Below, piece after piece: positions 38,299 through 55,194 of a stretch of DNA of 64,000 nt. Position 1 is the first letter of the stretch, and every line of letters begins with the position of its first letter. A program made the translations under genes and the position numbers. The stretch is from NCBI GenBank assembly GCA_950097015.1, contig CATNEN010000032.1, forward strand, positions 2,542,001 through 2,606,000, given 5' to 3'. Below the pieces are notes generated by a model that did no database searches, was not told the origin of the DNA, and saw only the letters and a list, made by a program, of their open reading frames with translations. Source of the DNA: Macrostomum hystrix. Its lineage: Eukaryota > Animalia > Platyhelminthes.

Positions 38299-44548
<6,250 letters not shown>

Positions 44549-45364: not shown

Positions 45365-47203
45365 CTAGTCCAACTGATCGGTCTGTTCCTCCTCTTCGTA
45401 AACAGTCTTCAGCTTTTTAAACACCGGCTGAATGACCTCGACGACGACCCTCCGTTGGCAGCTTCCGTGGGACCTCACCTCAAGCCAATGGGTCCACCGG
45501 AACAGGAACCGGAAGTAGCGAAACGTCTTCAGTGCAGCGAGCAGTCTCAGCAGGTCGAAGGCCAAATCAAAGTCGTTGTTGCACTTCTGGAAGGTCTCAG
45601 TGACGAAGGCGATGAGAAAGTTCAGCAGGTTGAGGCCAACGAACACGAAGAACAGCACGTGGATGATGAGGACCATTGCGCTGTCCAGGTTGAATGTGAT
45701 CATGTTGAGGATGATCTTGACTGACGAGTAGAGCGACAGCAAGCCGGTCTCGAAGTCGGGCGAGTCGACCAGGATGAAGAAGTCCAGGCTGAAGAGGATG
45801 ATCCAGTAGAAGAGCAACGGCAGCGCGGCCAGGAAGCTGGAGAGCATGCAGTGGAAGGTGAAGAAGAGCTTGCCGACAGACCTGGAAGCGATCTCGATGT
45901 ACTGCGCAAAGTGCAGCAGAGTGAACGCGATGAACAGCGTGTTCGACCCGATGAAGACCTGCTCAACAAAGCTGCTTGGCCTCATGTGCAAGTAGAAATC
46001 TGGATACTGCAGCAGCGAGGCAAACAAGAAAAAACTGCTGCCACTGATGAAAGCAACCGCCTGGTAGGCGTCGAAAATCCAACGGCGCACGAATTGGGCC
46101 CCAGAAGCGCCGCCTTGGGCAACAATCTGGAGACGACGTCTGCGCTCGGTGAGATGCAGAACTGCCTTAATTAGTAGGATTAGCAAGTGAAATGCAGACA
46201 GATATGAGATCATCAAATAGCTAGACAGCATTGACTCAAATGTGTCGCTGCACAACTTCTTTCGAACGGTCTGACTAAAAAATATCTTAAAGTACAATGT
46301 TGTATTGTATAGCGACGAGATGTTATAGCCATCACGAGTGGCTGCAGCAAAGGCAGCGCGATTGCAGTGAATGAGATTGCCAAAGCAGGACACTAGATCC
46401 ATGGCTGCCTCACTGACAACAGTAGCGAGGAAGATTATCGTCGGCACGCTCAGCACCAGCAGCCTGAGAAAAGTGATGATCCGAGTCTGACGAAACGTCA
46501 ACCGAAGCCACTGACGGGTCAGAGGGTCCTCCATTAGCTTTGACTTTTTCAGCGCCTCTACCTGACTCGAGGCCACGTAGGTGAGTAAGAGCAGAGGACT
46601 CACTCCGCATCGACTGCCGTGACTCAGGTCATAGTCGGTCAGGTCGTAGAGACGAATGGCCCATCCGCCGGATCGAGTCTCCGACTTCAGCAGGTAGTTC
46701 GGCAGGTGCAGCATCTTGCGAGCCAGACGGAATGCGCCGAACTTGACGCACGCCTCCAGAGGTCGGAGGCCGCTCGAGTCCTCTTGAGTGACCAGTCTGT
46801 CCAGCAGGCGAGGCTCTCTGCTCAGAGCGGAGAGGAGAACCGACTCCAGTCGTTTGGCTCGCTTGAACCTCGGCGCGTACATCAGACAGCGAGCCAGACT
46901 GTGCACCACGGTGCTGCCATCGAGCTCCAGCTGAGCCAGGTGGTCGGCGCTGTCCTCCAGCAGAGCCTCGAACACTCGCACCGACTGCAGCAGAATCGCC
47001 AGGTGGATGGCGTAGCCGAACTGCAAGCTGACGAAGCCCCACTTGCGGCGGCTTCTCGGCAGACAGCAGCAGATCTCGTGGCCCTCCGTGACGTCGACCA
47101 GCGGCTGAGCCAGCCTACTGGACAGGTCCGGCTTCATCGCCAGCAGGAAGGCGACCGGGTCGTCGTCCACCAGAGCAGCCAGCGCTACGTCAGCCGCTTC
47201 CAT
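45365..47203 (-). CDS. TRPV-like ankyrin/6TM cation channel, copy 1 (intronless)
   Basis: Ankyrin-like HLAILLQ, GSTVVHSLA and SGLRPLEACVKFG; the TRPV linker motif LYDLTDYD; six hydrophobic segments; S6 GLNLLNFLIAFVTETFQK. The start is placed at the ATG shared by all three copies; another in-frame ATG exists at 47323. Confidence 0.8.
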   Translation of the reverse strand: MEAADVALAALVDDDPVAFLLAMKPDLSSRLAQPLVDVTEGHEICCCLPRSRRKWGFVSLQFGYAIHLAILLQSVRVFEALLEDSADHLAQLELDGSTVVHSLARCLMYAPRFKRAKRLESVLLSALSREPRLLDRLVTQEDSSGLRPLEACVKFGAFRLARKMLHLPNYLLKSETRSGGWAIRLYDLTDYDLSHGSRCGVSPLLLLTYVASSQVEALKKSKLMEDPLTRQWLRLTFRQTRIITFLRLLVLSVPTIIFLATVVSEAAMDLVSCFGNLIHCNRAAFAAATRDGYNISSLYNTTLYFKIFFSQTVRKKLCSDTFESMLSSYLMISYLSAFHLLILLIKAVLHLTERRRRLQIVAQGGASGAQFVRRWIFDAYQAVAFISGSSFFLFASLLQYPDFYLHMRPSSFVEQVFIGSNTLFIAFTLLHFAQYIEIASRSVGKLFFTFHCMLSSFLAALPLLFYWIILFSLDFFILVDSPDFETGLLSLYSSVKIILNMITFNLDSAMVLIIHVLFFVFVGLNLLNFLIAFVTETFQKCNNDFDLAFDLLRLLAALKTFRYFRFLFRWTHWLEVRSHGSCQRRVVVEVIQPVFKKLKTVYEEEEQTDQLD

Positions 47204-47954
47204 GCTGAACTTGGTTGCCGCAGCGACTGCTATTGAGCAGGGAGCAACCTGGTTTCGAACTTTCTTAGTATTATTATAAGTGTGAAATTCAACGGACTCG
47301 GTTATTGCTTGACCCGTGCTCATTGCAGGTAAACGAGGAAACTTTTCTGGCAGGTCTCCGAAGATATTTTCGGGCTAAATTTTCCCACAATGCTCAGGTC
47401 GATGCTTTTATACTGAGCGCGGGGGACGCGAAATCCTACTGGTGCCATGTCGAATCGCTGGGGTGGCAGTTCCTGGTTCGTCTGAGGAGGCCCTGGTCTC
47501 TTCTGTGGGGCACAACAGCCTGAGCAAACAGTCTCACAGATTACGAGTGCCACTCAATGACTGCGGACTAGATGATTGTTTGCTAGGCTCAATGCCCAAT
47601 CAGACCTTGTTTGCTAATGTTAATATCGATGCATTAGCTGGCTGATGTTTGGTTTTAGTCATTATTCCAGGTGCTGCCAAATTGGACTTCAAACTATTTT
47701 TCTGCCTTAGAAATTAAACGAACCCAAAGATCTACTTAAACCTGAGTTTCTGATACCGCGTGCTAAAAGATAGTATTCGTTAGGATTTAGATTAGCCACA
47801 ATGAATGTTAGCTCAGCTGAGCTGAATGTTTAGATTTATTTCTCCCACAATCGGAGATCTGCTCGCAATATGTTTGAATAGGCCCTGGCGTTGACTTTGC
47901 AGTTTTAGTGAGGGCTGCATTCGACTTACCGTAATAGGAAAATTTACCAAGTAA

Positions 47955-49540
47955 TGCTGATCTGAATCCTCTACACACACTGGGATTTCTGAATCTAAAT
48001 CCTCTACAAACAATGGGATTACTGAATCTGAATCCTCTACACACAATGGGATTACTGAATCTAAATCCTCTACACACACTGGGATTTCTGAATCTAAATC
48101 CTCTACAAACAATGGGATTACTGAATCTGAATCCTCTACACATAATGGGATTTCTGAATCTGAATCCTCTACAAACAATGGGATTTCTGAATCTGAATCC
48201 TCTACACACAATGGGATTTCTGAATCTGAATCCTCTACACACACTGGGATTTCTGAATCTAAATCCTCTACAAACAATGGGATTACTGAATCTGAATCCT
48301 CTACACACAATGGGATTTCTGAATCTGAATCCTCTACACACAATGGGATTACTGTATCTGAATCCTCAACACACAATGGGATCACTGAATCTGAATCCTC
48401 TACAAACAATGGGATTACTGAATCTGAATCCTCTACACACAATGGGATTACTGTATCTGAATCCTCAAGACACAATGGGATCACTGAATCTGAATCCTCT
48501 ACACACAATGGGATTTCTGAATCTGAATCCTCTACACACACTGGGATTACTGAATCTAAATCCTCTACAAACAATGGGATTACTGAATCTGAATCCTCTA
48601 CACACAATGGGATTACTGTATCTGAATCCTCAAGACACAATGGGATCACTGAATCTGAATCCTCTACACACAATGGGATTTCTGAATCTGAATCCTCTAC
48701 ACACACTGGGATTTCTGAATCTGAATCCTCTACAAACAATGGGATTACTGAATCTGAATCCTCTACACACAATGGGATTACTGAATCTGAATCCTCTACA
48801 AACAATGGGATTACTGAATCTGAATCCTCTACAAACAATGGGATTACTGAATCTGAATCCTCTACAAACAATGGGATTACTGAATCTGAATCCTCTACAA
48901 ACAATGGGATTACTGAATCTGAATCCTCTACAAACAATGGGATTACTGAATCTGAATCCTCTACACACTATGGGATTACTGAATCTGAATCCTCTACAAA
49001 CAATGGGATTACTGAATCTGAATCCTCTACAAACAATGGGATTACTGAATCTGAATCCTCTACAAACAATGGGATTTCTGAATCTAAATCCTCTACAAAC
49101 AATGGGATTTCTGAATCTGAATCCTCTACAAACAATGGGATTACTGAATCTGAATCCTCTACAAACAATGGGATTACTGAATCTGAATCCTCTACACACA
49201 ATGGGATTACTGAATCTGAATCCTCTACAAACAATGGGATTTCTGAATCTAAATCCTCTACAAACAATGGGATTTCTGAATCTAAATCCTCTACAAACAA
49301 TGGGATTACTGAATCTGAATCCTCTACAAACAATGGGATTACTGAATCTGATTCCTCTACACCCAATGGGATTTCTGTATCTGAATCCTCAACACACAAT
49401 GGGATTACTGAATCTGAATCCTCTACAAACAATGGGATTACTGTATCTGAATCCTCTACACACAATGGGATTACTGTATCTGAATCCTCTACACACAATG
49501 GGATTACTGTATCTGAATCCTCTACACACAATGGGATTAC
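47955..49540. repeat. 33-bp minisatellite (CTGAATCTGAATCCTCTACACACAATGGGATTA)
   Basis: About 48 units between the divergent TRPV copies 1 and 2. Confidence 0.96.
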
Positions 49541-50112
49541 AGCTTATTGGCCTATTTATTGTCCTAGTTTAAGTCTAGGCACTAGTGCTTTGGCTTGGAA
49601 TAAACAATCATTAGACAGTAAGTACTCCATATCAAAGTGCATTGTATTGCTTAGACGGCCGAGCAGTGGCAGGCTGGCCCTACTGAAATGAACCACGCAG
49701 CAACAATGGGAATATTGAATATATCAGATAGCGATTGGAATTCCAAGTTGGCCCAAGTTAGAGTGCTGAAGTCCTGGGTGGATCGCAGAGAGGACAGCTG
49801 CAATGGCAGTGGAAAGTTGGTCCGCAGTAAACGCCTTGGCATGGACACACAGCAATGGGCACACAGCAATGGGCACACAGAGGAACTAAAGGCAATTGGG
49901 CAAGAAGCTGCTACTGCGCTGTGAACGCAGCCGCTTTGTGCAGGCGGGCGTACAGGGTAAAGGCCTGTAGGGTGCTGTAGCTGTACTTAAGTTTAAATTT
50001 ACAGCATATAAAAAGCGTCCTTGAATTATTTACTCAACGTTCAATCAGCTCAAGCTGTAAAAAAACATTTCGGTACAGAAACTCTTCCTGAGTTTTTTGG
50101 AAAAAATTAGGC

Positions 50113-52014
50113 ATGGAAGCGGCTGACGCAGCGCTGGCTGCTCTGGTGGACGACGACCCGGTCGCCTTCCTGCTGGCGATGAAGCCGGACCTGTCCAGTA
50201 GGCTGGCTCAGCCGCTGGTCGACGTCACGGAGGGCCACGAGATCTGCTGCTGTCTGCCGAGAAGCCGCCGCAAGTGGGGCTTCGTCAGCTTGCAGTTCGG
50301 CTACGCCATCCACCTGGCGATTCTGCTGCAGTCGGTGCGAGTGTTCGAGGCTCTGCTGGAGGACAGCGCCGACCACCTGGCTCAGCTGGAGCTCGATGGC
50401 AGTACCGTGGTGCACAGTCTGGCTCGCTGTCTGATGTACGCGCCGAGGTTCAAGCGAGCCAAACGACTGGAGTCGGTTCTCCTCTCCGCTCTGAGCAGAG
50501 AGCCTCGCCTGCTGGACAGACTGGTCACTCAAGAGGACTCGAGCGGCCTCCGACCTCTGGAGGCGTGCGTCAAGTTCGGCGCATTCCGTCTGGCTCGCAA
50601 GATGCTGCACCTGCCGAACTACCTGCTGAAGTCGGAGACTCGATCCGGCGGATGGGCCATTCGTCTCTACGACCTGACCGACTATGACCTGAGTCACGGC
50701 AGTCGATGCGGAGTGAGTCCTCTGCTCTTACTCACCTACGTGGCCTCGAGTCAGGTAGAGGCGCTGAAAAAGTCAAAGCTAATGGAGGACCCTCTGACCC
50801 GTCAGTGGCTTCGGTTGACGTTTCGTCAGACTCGGATCATAACTTTTCTCAGGCTGCTGGTGCTGAGTCTGCCAACGCTGACGTTTCTGCTCACAATAGT
50901 CTCCCAGTCCGTGATGCTGATGGTTTCCAGTTTCGGACTTCTGGTGCATTGCAATCGGGCCACATTTACTGCAGCTGGAAAACTGGGTCTGAATGCAACC
51001 GCCCTGCTCAATACCACACTATATTTGAATCTGTTTTTTGAGCAAACTGTCAAGTACACTAAGTGTCATAGCATCGTGAACGCGATGCTCATTAACAGCC
51101 ACTTGATCTGGGCAGTGCTAGTCTTCATGATGCTGATGCTGATTGTGAAGTCCATATTGTGGTTCATCGAACGAAGCCAGCGTGCGAAGCTTCTGACTGC
51201 TGACAACTGGCAATCCGGAGCTCCCTTCGTCAGACGCACGATGTTCGACTTCTACTTGCTCATGGCCATCATTAGTGGTGCCTGCTTCCAGGCAGTTCTG
51301 TTGGACAACTTTGCTTCGAATGAGATAAGCTGGTACCAGTTGCTGCTGCCAATCAACCAGCGCTCGGGACGGGTCATCGAGCAACTCTTTCTAGGCTCTA
51401 ACGCACTCTTCATCACGACAGTGCTGTTGCACTTTTCGCAATACCTGGAGATTGTTACGAAAAGCATAGGCAAACTGTTCTTCACTTTCCACAGCATGAT
51501 GACCAGCTTTCTGGCATCGTTGCCACTGCTCTATTTCTGGATCATTCTCTTCAGCTTGATCTTTTTCATTCTGGTGGACTCGCCTGACTTTGCCAGTGGT
51601 CCGCTATCGCTCTACGCCTCTGTGAAGGTCATCCTCAACATGATAACTTTCGACCTTGACAGTTCTATTGTTCTAATAATTCATATTGTCTTCTTTGTCT
51701 TTGTCGGCATCAACCTGCTGAACTTTCTCATCGCCTTCGTCACTGAGACCTTCCAGAAGTGCAACAACGACTTTGATTTGGCGTTCGACCTGCTGAGACT
51801 GCTCGCTGCACTGAAGACGTTTCGCTACTTCCGGTTCCTGTTCCGGTGGACCCATTGGCTTGAGGTGAGGTCCCACAGAAGCTGCAGACGGCGGGTGGTC
51901 GCTGAAGTCATTCACCCGGCGTTCAAGTGCCCGCAAAGTTGCAGTTTGAATGAAGGTGCGACATTGTGGCGGGCACCAATGGTTGCTAATGGGAACCAGA
52001 ATCGAGTTGTTTAG
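50113..52014 (+). CDS. TRPV-like ankyrin/6TM cation channel, copy 2 (intronless, 633 aa)
   Basis: Same motifs as copy 1 in an intact ORF, with near-identical N-terminal ~250 aa. Confidence 0.8.
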   Translation: MEAADAALAALVDDDPVAFLLAMKPDLSSRLAQPLVDVTEGHEICCCLPRSRRKWGFVSLQFGYAIHLAILLQSVRVFEALLEDSADHLAQLELDGSTVVHSLARCLMYAPRFKRAKRLESVLLSALSREPRLLDRLVTQEDSSGLRPLEACVKFGAFRLARKMLHLPNYLLKSETRSGGWAIRLYDLTDYDLSHGSRCGVSPLLLLTYVASSQVEALKKSKLMEDPLTRQWLRLTFRQTRIITFLRLLVLSLPTLTFLLTIVSQSVMLMVSSFGLLVHCNRATFTAAGKLGLNATALLNTTLYLNLFFEQTVKYTKCHSIVNAMLINSHLIWAVLVFMMLMLIVKSILWFIERSQRAKLLTADNWQSGAPFVRRTMFDFYLLMAIISGACFQAVLLDNFASNEISWYQLLLPINQRSGRVIEQLFLGSNALFITTVLLHFSQYLEIVTKSIGKLFFTFHSMMTSFLASLPLLYFWIILFSLIFFILVDSPDFASGPLSLYASVKVILNMITFDLDSSIVLIIHIVFFVFVGINLLNFLIAFVTETFQKCNNDFDLAFDLLRLLAALKTFRYFRFLFRWTHWLEVRSHRSCRRRVVAEVIHPAFKCPQSCSLNEGATLWRAPMVANGNQNRVV

Positions 52015-52573
52015 CTGGCATGTGAACAATGACCCAAAAGGCCGAAAAAATATGTTGCTTTCATGAGCAAACATTTCGCGCAATCGTTATTATAGGACGC
52101 AACTTCGTCACGTGTGTTCATTTCAAACAAGTATTTATTTTCAGGTTTTATTTTTTTAATTTTGGTTTGGATTTAAAAAATAGTTATTGTACATCTCTGC
52201 ATGATTTTATTGTTTTCTCTTAAAAAATAAGGTATTGTCTTCTATTAATGAGAGTGGTTTTTCGCTGAGAACCTGCGTATGCAAAAGATGTGCGAGCCGA
52301 ACTAACAAACACTGGGACTATTTCAAAACCCATGTTTTTCTTTTTTATCTCCCAAAATAAACTTTGATTTTACCAATAAATCAAGGGAAAAGAAAGCAAT
52401 CATACGAATCAAAGGATAGCGCATTTCACAGGTGTTACAGCTTTCGCCGGATAGAAGCAAGAGCTTGTTAGTGTCAAGACCATACTTTGGTCATGGGTGG
52501 TCCTGTTAGAAAGAACTATTCAATGCGAGCAAGATAAAAACGCAAAATAAACGAATTCCGACTATGTCAAATG

Positions 52574-54464
52574 TCAAGTTTCATGGAACGGTGCAAACTC
52601 GAGCGGAGAAAAGCCTCCATTTCGCTGATTCGACTTCACATTTATTAGTTTGTGGACTTTAAACACCGGCTGAATGGCCTCGACGACGACCCTCCGTTGG
52701 CAGCTTCCGTGGGACCTCACCTCAAGCCAATGGGTCCACCGGAACAGGAACCGGAAGTAGCGAAACGTCTTCAGTGAGGCGAGCAGTCTCAGCAGGTCGA
52801 AGGCCAAATCAAAGTCGTTGTTGCACTTCTGAAAGGTCTCAGTGACGAAGGCGATGAGAAAGTTCAGCAGGTTGAGGCCAACGAACACGAAGAACAGCAC
52901 GTGGATGATGAGGACCATTGCGCTGTCCAGGTTGAATGTGATCATGTTGAGGATGATCTTGACTGACGAGTAGAGCGACAGCAAGCCGGTCTCGAAGTCG
53001 GGCGAGTCGACCAGGATGAAGAAGTCCAGGCTGAAGAGGATGATCCAGTAGAAGAGCAACGGCAGCGCGGCCAGGAAGCTGGAGAGCATGCAGTGGAAGG
53101 TGAAGAAGAGCTTGCCGACAGACCTGGAAGCGATCTCGATGTACTGCGCAAAGTGCAGCAGAGTGAACGCGATGAACAGCGTGTTCGACCCGATGAAGAC
53201 CTGCTCAACTATTTTTCCCCCGGTTCCGATCACTTGGATACAACTTTAGATAGAACCTCTCTGACTTCAGGATGAATGTGAAAACGACAAAGCAGAAGCC
53301 ACTGGAAATCGCGATCACATGATAGCCGTCGAAGATGACCCTGCGAATGAACCTGTCGAACAGGGACCAATTGTCAGCGGTCAACAGTTTCTGCCTCTGT
53401 GAGCGTTCGATGGCAGAGAAGATAAGCTTCAGGGCGGCCGTCAGACACATAAAGGAAGTCACCATGCAAATGACCATAAAATTGACATCCATAAATTGCA
53501 GGATTTGGATGCAACCGTTCGACTTAACCGTGCGCTGATCGAACAGATCATAGTAAAGGCTTGTGTTGCTCAGCATACTCTCGTTTAGTCCAGCCGAAGC
53601 TGCAGCCGAAAAAGTTGCCCGATTGCAGTGAATGAGATTGCCAAAGCATGCTACAATCATCATGACAGGGTCACTCACAACCGTAAGCAAAAACAGGACA
53701 GTCGGGGCGCTTAATACAAGCAGCCTGAGAAAAGTGATGATCCGAGTCTGACGAAACGTCAACCGAAGCCACTGACGGGTCAGAGGGTCCTCCATCAGCT
53801 TGGACTTTTTCAGCGCCTCTACCTGACTCGAGGCCACGTAGGTGAGTAAGAGCAGAGGACTCACTCCGCATCGACTGCCGTGACTCAGGTCATAGTCGGT
53901 CAGGTCGTAGAGACGAATGGCCCATCCGCCGGATCGAGTCTCCGACTTCAGCAGGTAGTTCGGCAGGTGCAGCATCTTGCGAGCCAGACGGAATGCGCCG
54001 AACTTGACGCACGCCTCCAGAGGTCGGAGGCCGCTCGAGTCCTCTTGAGTGACCAGTCTGTCCAGCAGGCGAGGCTCTCTGCTCAGAGCGGAGAGGAGAA
54101 CCGACTCCAGTCGTTTGGCTCGCTTGAACCTCGGCGCGTACATCAGACAGCGAGCCAGACTGTGCACCACGGTACTGCCATCGAGCTCCAGCTGAGCCAG
54201 GTGGTCGGCGCTGTCCTCCAGCAGAGCCTCGAACACTCGCACCGACTGCAGCAGAATCGCCAGGTGGATGGCGTAGCCGAACTGCAAGCTGACGAAGCCC
54301 CACTTGCGGCGGCTTCTCGGCAGACGGCAGCAGATCTCGTGGCCCTCCGTGACGTCGACCAGCGGCTGAGCCAGCCTACTGGACAGGTCCGGCTTCATCG
54401 CCAGCAGGAAGGCGACCGGGTCGTCGTCCACCAGAGCAGCCAGCGCTACGTCAGCCGCTTCCAT
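52574..54464 (-). pseudogene. TRPV-like channel, copy 3, with a 1-nt frameshift at ~53211-53221 (pseudogene or sequencing error)
   Basis: ORFs 54530-53205 and 53233-52574 become one full-length paralogue if one A is removed from GGGGGAAAAA (giving ..RNRGKIVEQVF..). No other lesion was seen. Confidence 0.6.
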
Positions 54465-55194
54465 GCCTGATTTTTCGGAGATAGCAGAAGCGAACGCAGA
54501 ATATCCTTTAACGTGTCGAGTTTCCGTCACCTCTTCTGAAGATCGATGTAGATTGAATGAACAGCATGAATATCAGTTTACGCTCGTGTTTCATTTTTTT
54601 CTCTTATAACCAGCGGCTATCGGCCGTTCTCTCTGAGTGGTCTCCCCCAATTGCCTGAGTCGCATTGTTTTTAGAGAGGATTGAGAGTCGCACAGGGCGC
54701 TTGTGCGCAAATACAGCTTTCTTTCTCCCAACTGCAGTTAGAGCCACTTCGAGGCCTCTGTCAACATTTACCATGGAAACCAATTGATTATTCAGAGGAA
54801 TCGTGGAGCTTCCTCTGTCCAGATCTGGTTTTGGTCGCTCTGGACGCAGCCCAGAAGCCAGCTGGCCGTGCGTCTACAGGTTTACAGGCTTGTTTGAACT
54901 GGACTGTTGCCTGGAGAAAGGCGAAAGTTTCCAATGCACTTCGTTATAATTAGATGATTAACTGACGCATCGATATCAATACATGTAATCATTAGCAAGA
55001 TTAGAAAGTGGTTAGGCCAGTCCACAGAATGGTACTCAACAGGACGAGTATAAGGCGTGCTTGCCATCTGCTCTCTGCCAGCTTGTTAAATTAGTATCGA
55101 TGTATTGCCTTAATTTTCCGCATTAGCTCATAGCATTTCATTTCTTTACCCGACGGAAACAACGCATTAGATTGCTGTGCTCCAATGTGCAGGT

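Follow-up and report, generated by a model that had tools for sequence, protein, structure and literature searches.

A 64,000-nucleotide (nt) stretch of the genome of the flatworm Macrostomum hystrix (contig CATNEN010000032.1 of assembly GCA_950097015.1, positions 2,542,001 to 2,606,000 of the forward strand; hereafter referred to as the window) contains exactly three copies of one gene, c1, c2 and c3, which are all located within 9.1 kb and alternate in orientation (Table 1). The genes c1 and c2 are arranged head to head with a spacing of 2.9 kb, and c2 and c3 lie tail to tail, separated by 560 nt. All three code for divergent TRPV-type proteins, and each is a mosaic in which blocks that are nearly identical between copies stand next to a strongly divergent part. 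A preliminary description, made from the letters of the window, had called the genes TRPV paralogues and had proposed that segmental gene conversion keeps parts of them uniform. Here, we characterise the mosaic and discuss how it probably arose. For c1, an additional in-frame ATG is present upstream at 47323, beyond the homologous region, and an exact look-up of c2 and of both c1 versions in public assemblies found nothing on record.

Table 1. Genes, blocks and tandem repeat of the TRPV-type gene cluster. Positions are those of the window, or c2 residues where indicated; ORF, open reading frame; aa, amino acids; GC3, fraction of guanine and cytosine at third codon positions; pS, proportion of synonymous sites that differ.
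Feature	Position	Strand	Description
c1	45365-47203	-	intronless ORF, 612 aa, predicted TRPV-type channel subunit
c2	50113-52014	+	intronless ORF, 633 aa; copy used for the structure model
c3	52574-54464	-	intronless; 629 aa after removal of a surplus base in the G5 run 53217-53221
Block A in c1	46455-47203	-	749 nt; 99.2-99.6% identical in all three copies; GC3 0.77
Block A in c2	50113-50861	+	749 nt
Block A in c3	53716-54464	-	749 nt
Variable part of c1	45968-46454	-	about 50% nt and 40-42% aa identity to the other copies; pS 0.71-0.78
Variable part of c2	50866-51372	+	residues 252-420
Variable part of c3	53210-53715	-	misassembled G run 53217-53221 at the 3' edge
Micro-tract, identical in c1 and c3	c1 46359-46387, c3 53620-53648	-	29 nt within the variable part; encodes CFGNLIHCNR
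Blocks B and C in c1	45416-45967	-	4 differences in 552 nt from c3; block B GC3 0.91
Blocks B and C in c3	52658-53209	-	counterpart of c1 45416-45967
Block B in c2	51373-51709	+	not homogenised; 71% nt and 72% aa identity to c1/c3; GC3 0.63
Block C in c2	51710-51926	+	counterparts c1 45633-45416, c3 52875-52658
Protein, block A	c2 residues 1-251		N-terminus, ankyrin repeats, beta-hairpin, linker helices, pre-S1, first third of S1
Protein, variable part	c2 residues 252-420		rest of S1, long S1-S2 loop (N-x-S/T sites, cysteines), S2, S3, S3-S4 loop
Protein, block B	c2 residues 421-532		S4, S4-S5 linker, S5, pore helix, upper S6
Protein, block C	c2 residues 533-604		lower S6, TRP helix, C-terminal strand
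33-nt minisatellite	47960-49540	not assigned	48 copies, 93% matches; occupies most of the c1-c2 spacer

Pfam identified no domain in the four ORF pieces of c1 to c3, c2 had no match at an E value of 1e-3 in a word-indexed database of 5.8 billion proteins and a phmmer search with c2 against the PDB sequences gave a chance match only. In these and all other database searches, c3 was represented by two separate pieces, and its corrected reading (see below) was used only for the codon alignment. A search by language-model features indicated TRP channels with ankyrin repeats, a TRPV3-like protein ranking first at 0.97. An exhaustive HMMER search with a profile of the three copies retrieved 145 distant relatives (best E value 5e-17), which share about 20% identity and are mostly 580-660 aa long. 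These include P0001, P0003, P0005 and P0025, for each of which one uninterrupted gene call of 586-665 aa exists on an environmental or metagenome contig, as well as one protein from the nemertean Lineus longissimus. A lack of introns may be a common trait in this family. Among 67 family members, Pfam assigned Ion_trans to 29 and ankyrin models to 12. A 67-sequence family profile matched TRPV6 with an E value of 1e-50 over profile positions 91-586, that is, from the ankyrin repeats to past the TRP helix, and TRPV5, TRPV3 and TRPV1/2/4 with E values of 1e-44, 1e-40 and 1e-33, respectively. The link to TRPV channels is thus transitive, leading from the profile of the window genes to their relatives, and through the family profile to TRPV6. 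An AlphaFold model of c2 built on the family alignment (pLDDT 80.3, pTM 0.80) was compared with the PDB using Foldseek, and all of the best 50 matches were TRPV1-6. Alignment of the model to residues 155-719 of rat TRPV2 with VIA-align gave a Z score of 20.3 and a root-mean-square deviation of 4.1 Å over 469 residues, so that the profile and the structure comparisons both bear out the initial assignment of the genes to the TRPV type.

The c2 model contains the linker hairpin, pre-S1, S1-S6, the pore helix and the TRP helix known from TRPV channels. However, only about three ankyrin repeats are present instead of the six of TRPV1-6, residues 1-154 of TRPV2 are unmatched, and the identity of c1-c3 to TRPV proteins is about 13-17%, with single-sequence searches remaining blank. 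Due to the reduced number of ankyrin repeats, we file the three proteins as divergent TRPV-type proteins and not as TRPV1-6 orthologues. TRPV-type channels carry the TRP box I-W-x-L-Q-R/K after S6. The TRP helix is located at c2 residues 554-587, where the copies read AFDLLRLL and lack the tryptophan, whereas the family consensus reads LQRL. At the filter position, a threonine is found in c1-c3, as opposed to an aspartate in the family consensus and in TRPV6. The absence of introns also sets c1-c3 apart from TRPV1-6 and from the Nanchung/OSM-9 types. Taken together, c1-c3 belong to a divergent TRPV-type family, and their products may form tetrameric cation channels. TRPV genes are present in free-living flatworms, including Macrostomum, and absent from parasitic flatworms (PMC5196486). 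The cluster documents that a free-living flatworm also possesses a TRPV-like family with a reduced ankyrin domain, which is missed by standard domain searches.

To describe the mosaic, the three genes were aligned together with 600 nt of flanking sequence, and identity was followed along the alignment and differences were counted for each block. The flanks on either side of each gene are 25-45% identical, which corresponds to the baseline of unrelated sequences, and in all copies identity reaches 100% no more than a few bases from the ATG. Block A, which starts here, contains only seven variable sites, with three differences between c1 and c2, five between c1 and c3 and six between c2 and c3; all of them are private to a single copy (one in c1, two in c2 and four in c3). 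The block ends after the motif RLLVL, directly before a serine codon, where identity drops from 100% to approximately 50% over about 10 nt. The adjoining variable part of roughly 500 nt remains at this level of identity and is characterised by saturated synonymous sites and indels. Whereas c1 and c3 are nearly identical again from the start of block B onwards, c2 is 67-83% identical to them over the first 340 nt of their shared stretch and rejoins the other copies only in block C, in which it differs from c1 at one of 167 positions (51710-51876) before the similarity decays up to approximately position 51926. The tails past the motif P-V/A-F-K, 17-29 residues in length, are unrelated among the three copies. 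The identity profile thus reproduces the mosaic of the preliminary description, which had listed about 745 nearly identical nucleotides from the ATG, an abrupt end of identity at RLLVL, a renewed identity of c1 and c3 over 551 nt and a return of c2 for about 170 nt from around position 51710; these coordinates and counts were correct. Within the variable part, c1 and c3 share a single identical run of 29 nt (micro-tract in Table 1). This is a short or remnant conversion tract, and its position shows that the variable region is not sealed off from conversion, but that tracts have entered it and were tolerated.

The blocks were mapped onto the protein in c2 numbering using the structure model and the profile alignment to TRPV6. 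While residues 1-60 of the model are of low confidence, the ankyrin region is formed by three confident helix pairs (residues 65-165), which align with TRPV2 from residue 155 onward. According to DSSP, these are followed by two strands (172-178 and 181-187), a long helix from residue 227, which represents pre-S1 and continues into S1, helices for S2-S6, the pore helix (496-507) and a strand at 595-600. The parts that are homogenised in all three copies, blocks A and C, make up the entire cytoplasmic skirt plus the gate. This agrees with the earlier proposal, in which the ankyrin/linker and TRP-helix regions are kept uniform, as the two blocks encode cytoplasmic parts: the ankyrin repeats, linker and pre-S1 in block A, and the lower S6, TRP helix and C-terminal strand in block C. 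The proposal that S1-S4 are unique to each copy only holds for S1-S3 and their loops; S4 starts at around c2 residue 416-421 and therefore opens the block shared by c1 and c3. The cluster would give rise to three subunits that have the cytoplasmic skirt in common, come with one of two types of pore module and each possess an S1-S3 periphery of their own.

The individual parts of the genes differ strongly in their apparent age. For all pairs of copies, pS is 0.010-0.026 in block A, and between c1 and c3 it is 0.006 in block B. In the variable part, pS is 0.71-0.86 for all pairs and hence saturated, with a nonsynonymous divergence (dN) of 0.55-0.61, and block B of c2 differs from that of c1 and c3 with a pS of 0.73, a dN of 0.17 and a ratio of dN to synonymous divergence (dS), omega, of approximately 0.06. 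When c1 is compared with c2, two of 194 synonymous sites differ in block A, whereas the variable part has differences at 89 of its 113 sites (Fisher p = 7.5e-52). The identity at synonymous sites indicates that selection at the protein level is not the explanation for the identity of the blocks. We conclude that the copies are ancient and under purifying selection, and that the identical blocks are young. The low omega of the pore module, the intact ORFs and a proportion of nonsynonymous differences (pN) below pS in the variable part predict that c1-c3 are functional genes. An estimate of dN/dS for the membrane part had been suggested in the preliminary description. Positive selection is not indicated by our data: pN stays below pS across the whole variable part, and only one omega estimate is finite (0.29). 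In two of the three pairs dS reaches saturation or infinity, which makes dN/dS poorly estimable here. The variable part is also the least conserved and most indel-rich region across the family; in 65 distant relatives it reaches 1.11 bits per column, while blocks A, B and C lie at 1.75-1.83, and the loop of the variable part has an occupancy of 0.45-0.51. A "hypervariable" segment of a receptor need not be a fast-evolving one, since in this cluster the variable parts are ancient and the constant parts are young.

Several observations point to gene conversion as the process that made the blocks alike. In a tract test, c1 and c3 agreed at 95 consecutive variable sites, a run longer than any seen in 10,000 permutations (maximum 16; p <= 1e-4). 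Such a permutation test cannot score blocks that are identical in all three copies, and for these we used the contrast at synonymous sites given above instead. The closest pair of copies changes from segment to segment: c1 and c3 are alike in block B, whereas the closest pair in the variable part is c2 and c3, with 48% amino acid identity versus 40-42% for the other pairs, and hence the segments do not all follow the same tree. A further indication comes from GC3, which is 0.76-0.77 in block A and 0.79-0.81 in block C, 0.91 in block B of c1 and c3 as opposed to 0.63 in that of c2, and 0.57-0.65 in the variable part. Within c1 and c3, the homogenised blocks have a GC3 of 0.81, compared to 0.57-0.61 for the parts that are not homogenised (p = 1e-8 and 1e-6). 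At the third positions that differ in block B, G or C in c1/c3 is paired with A or T in c2 in 36 cases and the reverse is seen in five (p = 8e-7). A rise in GC3 has also been used as a signature of regional conversion in fugu protocadherins (PMC1852091). As the GC3 mosaic within each gene tracks the conversion blocks, it suggests repeated GC-biased conversion and not selection on codon usage. Judged from these sequence features, namely the homogenisation of synonymous sites in blocks, the disagreement between segments and the raised GC3 of the homogenised parts, segmental non-allelic gene conversion between the copies, as initially proposed, is well supported.

Contigs assembled independently from sequencing reads were used to examine whether the mosaic is real. 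To this end, Logan contigs of the runs X1, X2, X3 and X5, which come from two studies and carry two organism labels, were placed on positions 49900-54700. In all four runs, contigs terminate approximately 30 nt inside the block edges, as is expected of a word graph at a true repeat. In the contig layout, the flanks of c1 appear as loose ends at 52658, 53209, 53620 and 54466, and a single contig (51856-52687) links the tail of c2 to that of c3. Each homogenised block is represented by essentially one contig. The word depth in X1 is 63-99 in unique sequence and rises to 174 in the block shared by c1 and c3 and to 260 in block A, corresponding to approximately 2.4 and 3.6 times the unique level; in X2 it is 2.6-2.9 in the unique parts and 7.8 in block A. 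The depth of 260 for block A in X1 is slightly more than three times that of unique sequence. Run X2 (organism B) has the same block structure, with unique parts that are about 0.5% different. In both X1 and X2, the only variants seen within the blocks are the known differences between copies. Four extra variants in block A (50463, 50481, 50504 and 50730) were observed in X3; they are present at about half depth, match none of the assembled copies and may be allelic or come from an additional, fourth block A located elsewhere.

The read-derived contigs also clarified the reading frame of c3. In the assembly, this gene is split by one additional base in a G5 run (53217-53221) that is followed by an A5 run (the two together spanning 53212-53221). 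A contig of X1 that covers the unique part of c3 (53180-53748, depth 73.8) has one base fewer at 53217 and is otherwise identical. The frameshift is thus an assembly error and c3 is intact; its corrected product is a 629-aa read-through that includes YPSDRNRGKIVEQVF. Left uncorrected, the homopolymer error at 53217 would falsely turn c3 into a pseudogene. Consensus errors in homopolymers may have caused other false frameshifts in the same assembly.

Based on these results, we think it likely that c1-c3 are ancient functional TRPV-type paralogues subject to recurrent GC-biased conversion in short tracts, the edges of which are set by loss of homology. Repeated short-tract non-allelic conversion with a GC bias would keep blocks A and C alike in all three copies and the S4-S6 pore module alike in c1 and c3 only. 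The weakly constrained S1-S3 region would have drifted below the identity needed for conversion, and the pore module of c2 would likewise have passed below this limit. In the next step, every later tract would halt at the same homology cliff. Common cliffs of this kind lead to edges that coincide in all copies. That conversion recurs, and that its edges are maintained by homology loss and not by selection, is what we infer from the pattern. Fast neutral divergence followed by a loss of conversion is the simplest account and requires no selection for variable sensors to produce the pattern, and we favour such a neutral process over a dedicated design for receptor diversification.

Some points weigh against this explanation. 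Only three sequences are available, from which recurrent conversion is not separable from a few recent events, and the high GC3 in the pore block of c1 and c3 could in principle stem from a GC-rich donor. A selected design would likewise lead to blocks A and C coinciding with a cytoplasmic module that is contiguous in the structure. Contigs built from words of 31 letters can neither phase variants within a block nor span a whole gene. Furthermore, the unique part of c3 has zero depth in X2 and X3, in which depth is only 2-8. The depth is zero at 53281-53602 and at 52315-52636 in the c2-c3 spacer, and c1 and c2 are present in both runs; this could reflect a true absence or a gap in coverage. 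Evidence for expression is limited to a hint: contigs of X5, a run of unrecorded kind, are only found on coding parts (c2 50963-51708, the junction into c1 and block A) and not on intergenic sequence, which hints at, but does not prove, an RNA origin of this run and expression of c1 and c2.

Other explanations were considered. One might suspect that the identical blocks are an artefact of assembly or polishing, in which one consensus was spread over copies that truly differ, as the assembly carries one or more consensus errors here, including the additional base at 53217, and none of the read-derived pieces reaches across an entire gene. We regard this as very improbable: each junction, consisting of a unique part and about 30 nt of block, is carried by independent contigs from four runs and two studies, each block collapses into essentially one contig with raised depth, and the block variants in X1 and X2 are limited to the known differences between copies, to which the low-depth run X3 adds four in block A. 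The breaks at the block edges together with the raised depth within the blocks thus argue that the mosaic is real. Even less probable, and clearly disfavoured, is the idea that c1-c3 are recent duplicates in which S1-S3 diverged by local hypermutation or very fast evolution. Although blocks A and C do look young (pS 0.01-0.03), the flanks are unrelated, the variable part combines indels with saturated synonymous sites, and the synonymous sites of the c2 pore module are saturated at an omega of about 0.06, indicative of a long constrained evolution. The copies could also be chimeras that arose by a few one-off exchanges, in which divergent S1-S3 or pore cassettes were imported from other members of the family, or a single event inserted blocks A and C into old genes, without ongoing concerted evolution. 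The sharp edges and the nearly difference-free interiors of the blocks are in line with such an origin, but we consider it improbable. The GC3 of 0.91 in the c1/c3 pore block and the asymmetry from weak to strong base pairs argue for many biased rounds, each of the three copies has private differences in block A, in keeping with a continuing exchange, and genes at saturated divergence would lack the homology to start a one-off pasting.

A stronger contender, though still an unlikely one, is a modular design under selection, in which conversion keeps the assembly module uniform and selection purges tracts that homogenise S1-S3, resulting in subunits that co-assemble but carry different sensors. 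It would account for the homogenisation of the whole cytoplasmic skirt and the gate in all three copies, despite blocks A and C being 860 nt apart, and for block edges that coincide in all copies. However, coinciding edges are already predicted by homology loss alone, positive selection is not detectable, S1-S3 are the least conserved region family-wide and the micro-tract within the variable part was tolerated. A compatibility in heterotetramers through uniform interfaces, as put forward in the preliminary description, is speculation, and TRPV heteromers do not require identical cytoplasmic domains. By analogy, one could go a step further and picture a selected architecture in which a skirt competent for co-assembly allows three or more S1-S3 sensors and two types of pore to combine in heterotetramers into a protocadherin-like repertoire; we give this a somewhat lower chance than selection on the modules as such. 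If an adaptive reading were true, the locus would provide a natural domain-swap series for the role of S1-S3 in TRPV gating.

The explanation that we prefer, recurrent GC-biased conversion between old paralogues, has a close counterpart in the clustered protocadherins (Yu et al., 2007, PMC1852091). Regional conversion occurs in protocadherin clusters of teleosts and mammals (PMC1852091; Noonan et al., 2004, as cited in PMC1852091). There, as in the cluster described here, neighbouring paralogues contain blocks that are more than 99% identical, including their synonymous sites, and that adjoin older, divergent blocks within one exon. Recognition is the presumed role of the divergent block, and GC3 is raised in the converted one. 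The two systems differ in that the genes described here are predicted to code for a six-helix channel subunit and not for an adhesion receptor, and in that there are only three of them, which alternate in orientation and lack shared constant exons. In addition, two homogenised blocks flank the divergent one in our case, and a third block is common to two copies only. The cluster represents a clean case of region-restricted GC-biased conversion in single-exon channel genes, in which the blocks map to structural modules of the TRPV type.

The sequence around the ends of the homologous region was also inspected. In every copy, homology starts with an AG located 1-3 nt ahead of the ATG (47204-47215, 50100-50112 and 54465-54480), which may act as a splice or spliced-leader acceptor, and c2 and c3 have an A-rich stretch of about 15 nt in common before this AG. 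The start of homology at an AG close to the ATG raised the idea of a retrogene origin, which was rejected because homology ends within the coding region and not in a 3' untranslated region or poly(A) stretch. Likewise, a shared intron at the 3' end of the homology was considered, as c3 reads AAA followed by GT at this site, and dismissed due to a splice phase that is inconsistent across the three copies.

Two repeats and a possible neighbouring gene were noted in the surroundings. The minisatellite between c1 and c2 gives rise to spurious long ORFs in several frames. On the other side of c1, an ORF on the reverse strand (42930-43649) encodes 239 aa, is rich in alanine and glutamate and has the appearance of a coiled coil; its sole Pfam match is weak and below threshold (DUF5355, E value 0.006), and the ORF may be an exon of an adjacent gene. 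Positions 40495-42671, which lie just upstream of the cluster, are occupied by a large purine-rich satellite with a 16-nt unit, which is present in about 129 copies and shows a strong GC and AT skew.

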